From the sequence record KT895374.1: a DNA stretch of 64,000 nucleotides; one strand, written 5' to 3'. Made by a program: the position numbers and the translations under genes. Numbering within the stretch: position 1 is the first letter of the stretch; each line of letters begins with the position of its first letter. Positions 39,779-43,690 of this stretch are shown here, one piece after another. The notes under the pieces were generated by a model that saw only the letters and a program-made list of their open reading frames with translations, ran no database searches and was not told the origin of the DNA.

Positions 39779-41476
39779 TTAAAATTCTTGGACTGCAATA
39801 AATTGGTTACTTGTAGCTAATAATCCAATAATACTAAATGTAGTCTTCATAATTTCAATATCAGTCTTAGATGAATTGATTACATCTGTCTCATAAATAT
39901 CTTCATATTTATCAGTCTTTAAATTATAAATTTTATCCTCTTTAATACATGTATCAATAATTTTGTCTCGATTTTCAATATCATCCACATAACGATTATC
40001 TAAGACTTTCTCATAGGAATAGATAAATGAATTAGACAAGATTTGAAGAAATTGATAAAAAAAGGATTCTCTATCTGATTTATTTGTATGGACTCTTAAT
40101 AACTCTTTATCATTAATTAATTGATTAGCAATTTCAAAGAATTTATCTTCATCTCTAAGAATTCTAGGGATTGTTAAATTTCCACCTGCAACATAACCGA
40201 ATTTCAATGAAGATTTACAAGCATATACTGCATCCTCAAAAAGATACTTTCTAGTTTCTCTTTCCATATCACTTTTTCCACCAATATATAATGTGGCATT
40301 TTGACCTTCTAGATCAGCAATACGTTTTAAGAGTTTAAATTTATCAGAATCAGTATTAATGAATCTTTCTTTTTTATCTAACTCTTTAATTTCATTCTTA
40401 ATTAACTCAATTCTATCTTTTAAATCTTCTTTATTTCCTTTACCTTCAATAAGTTTAGTATCTGTTTCATTACAAATAAACTTTCCACAAGAACCTAAAT
40501 ATTCTTCTGGCTTTAGACCGACTGTTCTTGGATCTTCTTTATTATAAATAGTTGCCCCAAGATAAATTGCTAAATCCTCAAATGCACCCTCTGCATTTTT
40601 ATTTGTGATTGCATAGTCAATTGTAACTACTTCTGTTTTACTCTTCATTCTATTGAGCCTAAAAAAGTTAAATGCAGGTTCATCATAGCCTTTTGAGATA
40701 ACCACCAAAGGTCTTTGTAAAGATACTGCATGTTGGAGAACATTATAAAGTACACTATTAATTTCTTCTTCTTCTAATTTATTATTGGATAAGAAGATAA
40801 GTGGTGAATTATACCTGCATGTAATGTTGTCTTTTTCATTCGCATAAAGGGCTGACATGTAACCTCTTGCTAATTCAATACCATCAGAAATAGTATAATC
40901 ATCATATTCACTAGGAGAGTTTTCTAATGAAATAAATCCATCTCCACCAATTTCTTTATAAATGTTATAAATTAATTCACCAGCGGATTTATCATTATTA
41001 GTTGAAATAGAAGCAATTGATTTAATCTTTTCAAAATTATCTTTAGTAATTGGAGTAGATAATTCTTTAATTTCTTCCATTAAAATTCTTTCAATTCTAT
41101 TTAAAATGTCGATAATATCTTTACTAGGAATCTTATTAGCTTTCATAATTTTTTTCAGATTTCTATATAATGAGCCAGAAATCATAATTGCTGAAGTTGA
41201 TCCATCACCAACTTCTTTAACTAAGTTACGACTAGTTTTTTTAGTAATTTCTAAAATAGTGGATGCAACTCTATCAGAAAATTTAATTTTATCCAAAATA
41301 GAGTAACCATCTTTTGTAATTCTATGTTCGATAGTCATTGGATCTTGAAGGATAGTAGTAGAACCATAAGGTCCTAAACTCTTAGATAAAACATCAGTTA
41401 GTTTATCAAGAATACCCTCAATAATTTCTTCTGTTTTTTCCTCGTTTAATACATTACTTCTAATCTCAATAGTCAT
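39779..41476 (-). CDS. GroEL-like phage chaperonin
   Basis: LGPYGST, ITKDGYSIL, VGDGSTSA, GYVAGG. Confidence 0.93.
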   Translation of the reverse strand: MTIEIRSNVLNEEKTEEIIEGILDKLTDVLSKSLGPYGSTTILQDPMTIEHRITKDGYSILDKIKFSDRVASTILEITKKTSRNLVKEVGDGSTSAIMISGSLYRNLKKIMKANKIPSKDIIDILNRIERILMEEIKELSTPITKDNFEKIKSIASISTNNDKSAGELIYNIYKEIGGDGFISLENSPSEYDDYTISDGIELARGYMSALYANEKDNITCRYNSPLIFLSNNKLEEEEINSVLYNVLQHAVSLQRPLVVISKGYDEPAFNFFRLNRMKSKTEVVTIDYAITNKNAEGAFEDLAIYLGATIYNKEDPRTVGLKPEEYLGSCGKFICNETDTKLIEGKGNKEDLKDRIELIKNEIKELDKKERFINTDSDKFKLLKRIADLEGQNATLYIGGKSDMERETRKYLFEDAVYACKSSLKFGYVAGGNLTIPRILRDEDKFFEIANQLINDKELLRVHTNKSDRESFFYQFLQILSNSFIYSYEKVLDNRYVDDIENRDKIIDTCIKEDKIYNLKTDKYEDIYETDVINSSKTDIEIMKTTFSIIGLLATSNQFIAVQEF

Positions 41477-41497
41477 ATGTTTTTCACCAATCTCTTT

Positions 41498-41800
41498 CTA
41501 AATGATTGTAAATTCAACAGTGTTACTATCTAATAAGTTAACTGATTCTACTGCAGGGTGTTCCTTAATAAATTTTAAACTTTCATTGAAGCTAAATAGT
41601 TTAATAGTACAACTCTTGAAATTACCAGAAGGAGGGTTCTGATTAGAATCAAAACCCTTCACAATATCATAGTTATCTATTTTCTTTAAAATTTCTATGA
41701 TCCGAAAACCATTCTTTTTAAATCGAAGACTCTTTAAAAAGTTTTCAGTATTATCTTCTGAATTTGTTAATTTATTATATAACGCATTATTTTCATTCAT
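41498..41800 (-). CDS. Hypothetical protein
   Basis: 100 aa, SD AAGGGGA. Confidence 0.7.
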   Translation of the reverse strand: MNENNALYNKLTNSEDNTENFLKSLRFKKNGFRIIEILKKIDNYDIVKGFDSNQNPPSGNFKSCTIKLFSFNESLKFIKEHPAVESVNLLDSNTVEFTII

Positions 41801-41837
41801 ATACAGATCCCCTTATATTTTATTAACCCTAAGAGAA

Positions 41838-42098
41838 TCATTTAACCTTATTAGTTTTATTAGTTACTACTTTTTGTTTCTTTTCTGCATCCTCACGAAT
41901 AGCTCTAATTTCTCTAGTTTCTTTTTCTAAAGCTTCTTCCTGTTTCTTTTGTAAACTATAAAGAATTGGAAGTTCCATTGTTACAATTTCGTTATAAGAT
42001 AATTTACCATCAAAAAGTTTTAATAAATAGAGTAAAAATTCAGAATCTTTATTTTGATTGAATTTAACTCTTTTACCTACTCTTCCTTCTCCACCGTA
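41838..42098 (-). CDS. Start-less 86-codon ORF reached by a putative -1 frameshift from the gp26-like gene
   Basis: Slippery CTT TTT TTT at 42106-42098; the -1 frame is open to TGA 41840-41838 (YGGEGRVGKRVKFNQNKDSEFLLYLLKLFDGKLSYNEIVTMELPILY...). Confidence 0.65.
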   Translation of the reverse strand, partial: YGGEGRVGKRVKFNQNKDSEFLLYLLKLFDGKLSYNEIVTMELPILYSLQKKQEEALEKETREIRAIREDAEKKQKVVTNKTNKVK

Positions 42099-43246
42099 AA
42101 AAAAAGCATTTCTTCCATATTGACTCCAACATCACCAAGATCTTTATCACAATTTTTACATTTAGGAGCTTTAATTTTATAATCAATTTTATATTTATCA
42201 GTTCGTTTACCAACAAATTTACCTAATTCTTTATAATCCTTAACACTTAGTTTTTCAATGATATTAAGCATCATATTTAAATCTTCAATTTGAATATAAC
42301 TAACTTTTCCCGTTTGTTTGAAAACTTCAATATCAACAATATAAAGGTTTTTAATAAATAATAGAGTTGTAATAACTGTTTCTTTATCTTCTGAAGAATT
42401 ATCAATTGCTCTTAAGATGTTAAGATGATCTTCAAGAGTTGGAGTTTTAATATCAAATAAAATTTTACTTTCAGGTAGGACAACTCTATCAAAAGTATTT
42501 ACTAATGATTTCTGTACCAATTCAGAAGGCGATTTAGCAGTCTTAGTGATCTTTCGAATATTATCGAAGATCTCTTCATCTTTATAACTAATTAAAGAGT
42601 TATTATCTACCATCACTGGAGTTGTATCTTCACATTTTGCACAAGTAATATCAAATTTAACTTCATCAGGGAATGTTTGACAGTAAATTCCATAGAATAA
42701 CGTATCAAGATCAAATAGTGAAGTAATTTTTAGAAACTCTTGAAAATTAATTTCTCCAACTGAAGTACCATTGATCTTGCTATGAACCATTTGATACAAT
42801 TTTTTTCTATAATTATATTGATCAAGAGTACTATTACTTAGAGAACTAGAGTCAATCATTTTAATTGATTCCATATGAGCTACATAACCAGATTGATTAG
42901 CTACTACCTGATAAGAAGGTTTACCATTAAGTACAAAATCAATATCATTACTAGTTTCAAAAGTAGATTTATCTGATAATGTAATATTAGTGATATCAAT
43001 AGTAATATCTTTTAAAGCTTCACGAATTGATTCTGATTCACTCATATTCTTTTTTTCAGCAGCTTCAAAAGCAAACTCTGGTTCTTCAGGAGTTTGTTCT
43101 ACCTCTGGAATTTCTTCTTTATCTTCTTTCTTTTGTAGTTTTGTTTCATTTGGAACTACTTCTTCTGGATCAATATCAAATTCCTCTAAATCTTCTTTTT
43201 CTTTTAAAGTTTTAATTAAATCCTCACGATTTTTTCTAACAACCAT
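42077..43246 (-). CDS. Baseplate hub assembly chaperone (T4 gp26-like)
   Basis: FDLDTLFYGIYCQTF...ITCAKC and C-terminal CKNC; adjacent to the gp25-like gene. Confidence 0.7.
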   Translation of the reverse strand: MVVRKNREDLIKTLKEKEDLEEFDIDPEEVVPNETKLQKKEDKEEIPEVEQTPEEPEFAFEAAEKKNMSESESIREALKDITIDITNITLSDKSTFETSNDIDFVLNGKPSYQVVANQSGYVAHMESIKMIDSSSLSNSTLDQYNYRKKLYQMVHSKINGTSVGEINFQEFLKITSLFDLDTLFYGIYCQTFPDEVKFDITCAKCEDTTPVMVDNNSLISYKDEEIFDNIRKITKTAKSPSELVQKSLVNTFDRVVLPESKILFDIKTPTLEDHLNILRAIDNSSEDKETVITTLLFIKNLYIVDIEVFKQTGKVSYIQIEDLNMMLNIIEKLSVKDYKELGKFVGKRTDKYKIDYKIKAPKCKNCDKDLGDVGVNMEEMLFFTVEKEE

Positions 43247-43261
43247 TAATGATCACTCTTT

Positions 43262-43690
43262 CTATAAATATATTTTTGATATAATATTACTATTATCTCT
43301 ATCTTTACCAAATACTAAATTAAGAGTATAAACTGATTGATACTCATCATTCCCTGATACCAAAAACTGAATAAATAAAACACTTCTGTTAGATTTATTT
43401 TTAATAGTATTTATCTCAAAATCCACTATATCATTATTAGGTATGAATCTTTCAATTTGATTACTAATGCTACTTTTTAATTCATTCATAGTTATATCAT
43501 CTGAAAATTCAAATTGATAATTCTCTATTCCTACTCCTAGTTCTGGTTGATTAGGGTAAGTACCTCTTTCTATAATAATAATATTCTGAATGGTTTGAGC
43601 TAAAGCTTCTAATTTTTTTCTAGAAGCATTACTACCAAAATTATTTTTTTCTAACAATAATTCATCCTTAAAATCATTCATTAGAATCAT
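43262..43690 (-). CDS. Baseplate wedge protein (T4 gp25 / GpW-like)
   Basis: ERGTYPNQPELGVGIENYQFE motif; late motif at 43719-43730. Confidence 0.8.
   Translation of the reverse strand: MILMNDFKDELLLEKNNFGSNASRKKLEALAQTIQNIIIIERGTYPNQPELGVGIENYQFEFSDDITMNELKSSISNQIERFIPNNDIVDFEINTIKNKSNRSVLFIQFLVSGNDEYQSVYTLNLVFGKDRDNSNIISKIYL

Follow-up and report, generated by a model that had tools for sequence, protein, structure and literature searches.

Gene gp286 of Bacillus phage vB_BpuM-BpSp (KT895374; hereafter BpSp), a 255-kb relative of PBS1 and AR9 in the genus Takahashivirus, is overlapped at its 3' end by an open reading frame (ORF) in the -1 frame, and the locus raises the question of whether this ORF is translated as an extension of the gp286 protein or as a protein of its own. 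The tail assembly chaperone genes of long-tailed phages are a textbook case of programmed frameshifting, and a first-pass annotation of the 64,000-nucleotide stretch of BpSp DNA analysed here (the window) had proposed a frameshift of this kind in gp286, which it labelled T4 gp26-like. Comparison of the locus with its relatives makes it likely that a programmed -1 frameshift adds an extension of 86 residues to the gp26-like product of gp286.

The 3' end of gp286 reads ATG CTT TTT TTT ACG, followed by five more sense codons and TAG. The run of eight T residues (42098..42105) includes a heptamer, T TTT TTT (42098..42104), which stands in X_XXY_YYZ phase with the gp286 frame, and the corresponding U_UUU_UUU precedes the gp286 stop by six sense codons. 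The -1 frame is closed by a TGA nine codons upstream of the conserved site; thereafter it stays open for 86 codons, starting at 42098 and ending with a TGA at 41838..41840, with the first ATG, GTG or TTG after the site being the ATG at codon 42. The in-phase heptamer near the TAG, the closure of the -1 frame just upstream of it and the late position of the first start codon were all described correctly in the first-pass annotation, whereas the gap before the next gene, which it had taken to be empty, holds a GenBank gene, gp285, made up of the ATG-started last 46 codons of the -1 ORF. Among the 99 T7 positions on both strands of the window, only the one at 42098 lies in phase within a long ORF, near its stop, and with at least 60 open -1 codons behind it. 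At the 26% GC of the genome, a T8 run by itself carries little weight. Runs of T8 or A8 number 26 in the window, compared with 65 +/- 12 expected from dinucleotide-preserving shuffles; a count under half of the expectation suggests a general avoidance of long homopolymers in BpSp, a uracil-DNA phage.

Homologues of gp286 were found by tblastn only in the PBS1/AR9 group, in Staphylococcus jumbo phages (S6, DC4, SA1, Machias, LY01 and others), in Listeria phage LPJP1 and in Yersinia phage phiR1-37. Cultured phages, contigs encoding database homologues and metagenome loci together gave 27 loci, which fall into 19 clusters at 70% identity and 12 at 50%. Searches with the 86-residue extension itself, by tblastn and by a word-based method, returned no relatives, and homologues of the extension were reached by synteny only. 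The small ORFs behind the gp286 homologues share with the BpSp -1 ORF a homology that reaches upstream of the BpSp ATG; their annotated starts are odd or late, being a non-ATG codon translated as Leu in AR9, a TTG inside a conserved Leu-rich motif, or an internal ATG. The conserved downstream ORF lies in the -1 frame at all 27 loci. A stop closes this frame 2-21 codons before the site, past which it stays open for 73-98 codons, and the +1 frame closes 2-47 codons after the site. An independent small gene would lie in an arbitrary frame relative to the gene upstream, so that a -1 frame throughout is improbable: for 12 deep lineages it is roughly a 1-in-10^5 outcome, before any other evidence is considered. 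The LPJP1 record (MZ422438; L019:1-120) is linear and begins inside the gp26-like gene, 16 nucleotides past its CTT TTT site, so that the record ends split both the gene and its extension, neither of which is annotated.

An in-frame NNT TTY lies 6-14 codons before the gp26-like stop at 26 of the 27 loci, as CTT TTT (17 loci), CTT TTC (five), TTT TTC (two), ATT TTT (one) or GTT TTT (one), and locus L034, which has no Leu-Phe, carries an in-phase T TTA AAG at the equivalent place. The sites of L031 and L025 are full heptamers, T TTT TTC. The core shared by the close family is only NNU UUY, mostly CUU UUU, in a T run of 4-6, and the BpSp run of eight is the longest; every site found stands in the phase needed for tRNA re-pairing. 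A search of relatives for a conserved slippery site and -1 ORF, put forward in the first-pass annotation as a check, was thus positive and more widely so than expected, and of the frameshift reading itself the two-frame layout proved to be conserved, whereas the full U_UUU_UUU proved to be particular to BpSp within the close family.

The distribution of run lengths also bears on transcriptional slippage, in which the polymerase would stutter on the T8 run and yield transcripts with a changed number of U residues and, from these, the same long product. Polymerase stuttering becomes appreciable at a run length of about eight, which is the length of the BpSp run. The late genes of this phage group are transcribed from uracil-containing DNA by an unusual multisubunit polymerase that the phage encodes (PMC5312081, PMC7598289). 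The runs in relatives, however, measure four (six loci), five (most loci), six or seven, which is too short for efficient stuttering, and the layout is still kept. Phase should be irrelevant to slippage of the transcript, yet it is constant among the sites, and the replacement by T TTA AAG in L034 fits slippage of tRNAs rather than a homopolymer effect. Since the site is always in the re-pairing phase and the run is usually too short for stuttering, a ribosomal -1 slip is the explanation that would serve for the whole family; transcriptional slippage in its place is improbable, although in BpSp alone slippage on the T8 run could add to the ribosomal slip.

The codons around the site and the residues behind it show what is under selection. 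The Leu before the Phe is encoded by CTT in 22 of 22 Leu-Phe loci, compared with 28% of Leu codons in the same genes (10-72% per gene), and CTT is fixed even in a contig of 58% GC that prefers CTC. Only CTT places a U before UUY, and its fixation therefore argues for selection acting on the RNA in addition to the protein. In the stretch that separates the site from the first start codon, substitutions at positions 1, 2 and 3 of the -1 codons number 20, 10 and 44, respectively (five close pairs, summed, ungapped), and a Lys/Arg patch upstream of all candidate starts is conserved. No ATG, GTG or TTG occurs at or before the conserved motif in 9 of the 27 loci, and the candidate starts of the other loci mostly coincide with conserved Leu or Met residues. 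Shine-Dalgarno pairing at the candidate starts is, with one exception, weaker than -3.6 kcal/mol, whereas most of the next downstream genes score -4 to -11; these scores, calculated with a 10-nucleotide generic anti-Shine-Dalgarno core, are rough and are valid as a relative comparison within each locus.

These observations stand against the proposal that gp286 and the small ORF give two separate proteins and no fusion, the second being started at an internal ATG, at a non-canonical start or by re-initiation after the gp286 stop. Sequence records do annotate separate ORFs (gp285 in BpSp, g230 in AR9, with Leu as its first codon, g242 in phiR1-37 and g51 in cyanophages), and an ATG overlaps the gp26 stop in some T4-like phages. 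Separate translation, however, does not account for a frame that is constantly -1 and open back to the Leu-Phe site, for a Leu codon fixed as CTT, or for residues that are conserved before every candidate start with a coding-type pattern of substitution, and it would have to proceed from weak ribosome-binding sites or, in a third of the loci, with no start before the motif. In the BpSp extension L26 and F29 are invariant and L28 and G31 are at least 90% conserved (21 sequences); the BpSp ATG lies inside the conserved helical core, and a product consisting of gp285 only would therefore lack the invariant L-F-x-G part. There is accordingly little probability that the two ORFs are translated only separately.

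A profile search of 1.84 billion cluster representatives returned 1019 members of the gp286 family, 267 of them below an E-value of 1e-30. Nearly all of the best 150 stop 4-17 variable residues after a conserved (L/I)-F, F382 is conserved in at least 90% of 147 sequences, and no clean in-frame fusion was found among approximately 147 family representatives. The only database protein that holds the gp26-like part and the extension in one chain is P0019, an AR9-like fragment from a single contig, in which the change of frame precedes the Leu-Phe site by a few codons; P0019 is thus more likely to have arisen through an indel or a read error than as a natural fusion. Homopolymers are the commonest site of length errors, and P0019 does read as a single chain, as would be expected if the run had been miscounted in the BpSp assembly and gp286 and its extension were really one continuous gene. 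Against this, the two-frame state is seen in every one of more than 30 loci, which were sequenced in many laboratories by various methods and differ in run length, and P0019 shifts frame elsewhere than at the run. A homopolymer sequencing error, which the first-pass annotation had listed as an alternative, is thus very unlikely given the conserved two-frame layout.

The gp26-like label rests on several comparisons. A profile of the gp286 family (a hand-picked subset) was matched by hhalign to a profile of T4-type gp26, which includes gp086 of Rhizobium phage RHph_N34 (PF12322, E-value 2e-45), with a probability of 93.5% and an E-value of 2.2e-7 over 171 columns. The direct match of gp286 to Pfam PF12322 (T4_baseplate) scores 17.4 bits, below the gathering cut-off of 24.5 (E-value 0.0038), and a match of any kind to this family was obtained for only 2 of 16 family members. 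Among 147 sequences, C202, C205 and C363 do not vary and C366 is kept in at least 90%; these residues form two Cys pairs, a putative metal site, which align in hhalign with both pairs of T4-type gp26. An AlphaFold2 model of gp286 built on the 147 sequences has a mean predicted local distance difference test (pLDDT) score of 86.7, with residues 80-389 mostly above 90, and its matches in BFVD, a set of predicted structures only, include 'Baseplate hub assembly protein, bacteriophage T4-like' and 'baseplate hub subunit', with E-values of 1e-9 to 1e-5 and target template modelling (TM) scores of 0.5-0.67; larger proteins of other jumbo phages are also matched. Relatives of solved structure were found in the PDB neither for gp286 nor for the extension. 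By profile comparison and predicted fold, gp286 is a distant homologue of T4-type gp26, and the original label is upheld by hhalign and the predicted-fold matches, the Pfam match alone being sub-threshold.

Weak tblastn matches led to true gp26 genes, in which a similar pattern recurs. The gp26 gene of RHph_N34 stops two codons after an in-phase T TTT TTG, and the next ORF lies in the -1 frame, matches phrog_634 'baseplate hub assembly catalyst' (gp51-like) and has relatives in 80 phage records. The pattern was followed in a T4-type sample consisting of Atu_ph04 (Agrobacterium), cyanophages S-RSM4 and Syn19, Methylophilales phage Melnitz-3, Vibrio phage ValKK3 (KVP40-like) and Aeromonas phage Ah1. 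Every gp26 in the sample ends in Phe-Phe; the T TTT TT(T/C) of these codons is in phase and leaves 0-1 codons to the stop. The -1 frame opens only 2-15 codons before the gp26 stop and runs for 55-65 codons. The match of these -1 ORFs, unannotated in Ah1 and Atu_ph04, to phrog_634 begins at their second residue, which lies ahead of the ATG in the records that annotate one. The T4-type -1 ORF also matches the last 45 positions of phrog_150 'baseplate hub', indicating that some catalogued hub proteins hold both parts in one chain. Ackermannviridae phage Sa157lw has ATT TTC, no full heptamer, and an unannotated -1 ORF of 53 codons with the same motif. The layout is absent from an example of Jiaodavirus, a member of T4's own subfamily, where gp26 is followed by gene 25 and a gp51-sized gene is located upstream in divergent orientation. 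The odds that a gp26 to gp51-like -1 frameshift is old and general in T4-related and PBS1-like contractile-tailed phages, in which case the separate genes of T4 would be derived, appear evenly balanced.

Other jumbo groups contain related arrangements. Serratia phage Totoro (L035:2454-3002) and Klebsiella phage MJ359 (L036:2929-3462) possess a gp26-like 'baseplate hub' gene of 570-580 codons, and in both the conserved next ORF is in the -1 frame, open 43-59 codons before the stop and annotated with a non-ATG start; no convincing shift site could be named in Totoro or MJ359, and T_TTG is common to both. In RHph_N34 (L037:1257-4120) and ValKK3 (L043:524-3425), a tail tube gene is followed by gp26, the -1 gp51-like ORF and then a protein of 600-660 residues, with an extra ORF of 139 codons between the gp51-like ORF and the large protein in RHph_N34. 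This order recalls the tube, G, T and tape measure genes of lambda; the identity of the large gene after gp26/gp51 in these two phages as a tape measure was not established, the only match being a weak one to 'tail associated lysin'.

The extension is made up of a Ser/Gly-rich linker, a basic patch and a conserved helical core. Neither the BpSp extension nor nine of its relatives match a PHROG family at E-values up to 0.1, and Pfam returned chance-level matches only for the extension. The hhalign probability for the extension against gp51-like ORFs is 12% with five sequences and rises to 61.6% with eight (E-value 8e-5, 41 columns). The extension and the gp51-like ORFs are alike in position, frame, size and an S-x-x-(D/E)-(I/L)...P pattern, and the BpSp extension is probably, on these resemblances, a gp51-like 'hub assembly catalyst' domain. 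One small-ORF sequence gave a sub-threshold match (E-value 0.027) to PF17388, a mycobacteriophage tail assembly protein family; this match is probably due to chance, though it is the sole hint of a link to the classical tail assembly chaperones.

In the mechanism proposed for BpSp, most ribosomes would terminate at the gp286 TAG and release the 389-residue protein, whereas a minority would slip one base back while decoding Leu-Phe(-Phe) in the U run, with Phe-tRNA re-pairing from UUU to the overlapping UUU. The full U_UUU_UUU of BpSp would allow the P-site and A-site tRNAs both to re-pair. Slipped ribosomes would read 86 further codons in the -1 frame and give a second product of approximately 470 residues, comprising the gp26-like body, a flexible Gly/Ser-rich basic linker and the small conserved helical domain, so that, by analogy with the G and GT proteins of lambda, one mRNA would supply two products in a fixed ratio. 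The tetramer U_UUY, of the Z_ZZN type, is described as a minimal -1 site (PMC5009743). The anatomy of the locus, its conservation and the homologies are observed, and it is the slip, its efficiency and a role of both products in assembly that we infer.

Several points weigh against the frameshift. The case is one of sequence comparison throughout. No conserved downstream RNA structure was detected over the 27 loci (mean z -0.39), and an efficiency as low as that of the G/GT kind is therefore to be expected; most close relatives have only the tetramer U_UUY after CUU, whose tRNA re-pairs poorly, and efficiency there may be low. Homology between the extension and gp51 is moderately supported, by profile similarity. 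The ATG of the small ORF overlaps the gp26 stop in RHph_N34 and ValKK3, and coupled re-initiation could be the source of the small ORF product in these two phages. Lastly, the -1 frame of L027, one metagenome contig, is broken by an insertion. As for other kinds of stimulator, upstream Shine-Dalgarno-like sequences, sought by eye only, are inconsistent among loci, and the zero-frame codon after the site varies among loci with no pattern of rare codons.

The insertion in L027 (Ga0326513_10051848) measures approximately 173 nucleotides (L027:2250-2425) and begins a few codons after the shift site. The contig is otherwise near-identical to L028 and L029, and the conserved helical ORF is intact behind the insertion. 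The inserted sequence matches no Rfam family, shows no clear fold and lacks terminal repeats; it may represent an intron, a small mobile insertion or a chimera of the assembly.

The features of the locus are listed in the table. On the minus strand the genes follow one another in the order gp287, gp286 (389 residues, 'hypothetical protein'), gp285 (46 residues), gp284 (100 residues) and gp283.

Table. Features of the gp286 locus in the BpSp window, from upstream to downstream on the coding strand
Feature	Position	Strand	Basis
gp287, upstream neighbour, gp25-like baseplate wedge / sheath initiator gene	43262..43690	-	ORF; phrog_261
gp286, gp26-like baseplate-hub assembly gene, zero-frame product of 389 residues	42077..43246	-	phrog_18873 (E-value 9e-192); AlphaFold2; BFVD; hhalign
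Proposed recoding signal: T8 run holding CTT TTT and the in-phase T TTT TTT (42098..42104)	42098..42105	-	
-1 frame extension ORF, 86 sense codons and TGA	41838..42098	-	Aligned with 20 relatives
Extension linker, Gly/Ser-rich with basic patch, approximately the first 20 residues, no start codon	42039..42098	-	Alignment
Extension conserved helical core (L-L-x-L-F-x-G-K-L-S ... E-I ... M-E-L-P)	41919..42038	-	Alignment
gp285 (GenBank), ATG-started last 46 codons of the extension ORF	41838..41978	-	
gp284, conserved downstream neighbour, 100-residue ORF, phrog_27944, own strong ribosome-binding site	41498..41800	-	
gp283, conserved downstream neighbour, phage GroEL-type chaperonin	39779..41476	-	

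The match of gp287 to phrog_261 'baseplate wedge subunit' has an E-value of 3e-29, and its matches to Pfam Sheath_initiator and GPW_gp25 are below threshold. The order of small ORF, ORF of approximately 100 codons and GroEL is also found in AR9, Staphylococcus jumbo phages, phiR1-37 and metagenome contigs. The whole module, consisting of the gp25-like gene, the gp26-like gene with its extension, in most cases the ORF of approximately 100 codons, and GroEL (39779-43690 in the window), is kept in order across the PBS1, Staphylococcus jumbo and phiR1-37 group and in many metagenome contigs (L002-L005, L010-L015 and L032-L033), which suggests an assembly-chaperone cluster. The virion proteome of BpSp, comprising 23 proteins, includes gp287 and contains neither gp286 nor gp285 (PMC4870245), as would fit assembly factors.

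A joined coding sequence or annotated frameshift was found in none of the records examined (PBS1-type, jumbo and T4-type), and no published description of a frameshift in gp26/gp51 or in the PBS1 group was found in a literature whose coverage was incomplete, subscription journals lying mostly outside it. If the frameshift is old and general in T4-related and PBS1-like phages, it would supply the long-missing counterpart of the G/GT frameshift in this group, with gp26 and gp51 forming one two-product module. If the frameshift is real, it would indicate that setting a product ratio in the manner of G/GT arose or persisted in an unrelated protein fold. It would connect gp26 with gp51 in a concrete and testable way, the part that each plays in T4 hub assembly having been unclear for decades, and would correct the annotation of a conserved gene pair that is now given arbitrary internal starts or left unannotated in many phage genomes. 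The -1 sites of these loci, which range from the U_UUY tetramer alone to full heptamers and occur in phages of hosts from the Firmicutes to the cyanobacteria, would also form a natural series useful for the study of weak slippery sites.

Of the systems with which the BpSp locus can be compared, the tail assembly chaperone frameshift of the lambda G/GT type (Levin, Hendrix and Casjens 1993; Xu, Hendrix and Duda 2004; both as cited in PMC5009743) shares much of its proposed logic. In both, the ORFs overlap and a -1 shift a few codons before the first stop leads, or in BpSp would lead, to a minor product extended at its C-terminus; the second ORF has no start of its own; there is no strong stimulatory RNA structure; and the products are apparently not found in virions and act, or would act, in tail or baseplate assembly. 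Unlike G, however, gp286 has an unrelated, gp26-like fold, with no match to tail assembly chaperone families by Pfam, PDB or fold; the BpSp pair is located between a gp25-like gene and a 100-codon ORF with GroEL rather than between tube and tape-measure genes; and most close relatives have no more than a tetramer as slippery sequence. The switch equivalent to G/GT envisaged in the first-pass annotation is supported as a two-product reading. As the extension compares best with the small gp51-like ORF, the closest analogue is the gp26/gp51 pair and not a tape-measure chaperone.

T4 gp26 and gp51 are given as hub assembly chaperones (PMC3004832). The BpSp locus resembles this pair in that gp286 is, on the evidence above, homologous to gp26, in that the extension takes the place of the gp51-like ORF that follows gp26 in many T4-like phages, and in that both are, or in BpSp would be, assembly factors and not clearly virion parts. 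It differs in size, as gp286 is 389 residues long with a disordered acidic N-terminal part, whereas T4-type gp26 has 210-280 residues, and in arrangement, as the separate gp51-sized gene in T4's subfamily, seen in the Jiaodavirus example, indicates that T4 proper makes independent proteins. The gp26/g51 pairs of cyanophages, rhizobiophages, a KVP40-like phage and an Aeromonas phage differ from BpSp in having a full heptamer 0-1 codons before the stop, a shorter extension of 57-66 residues and no long Gly/Ser linker, but share with it the Phe codons in a U run of slippery phase, a gp51-like ORF in the -1 frame and conserved residues that precede the annotated start of the small ORF.

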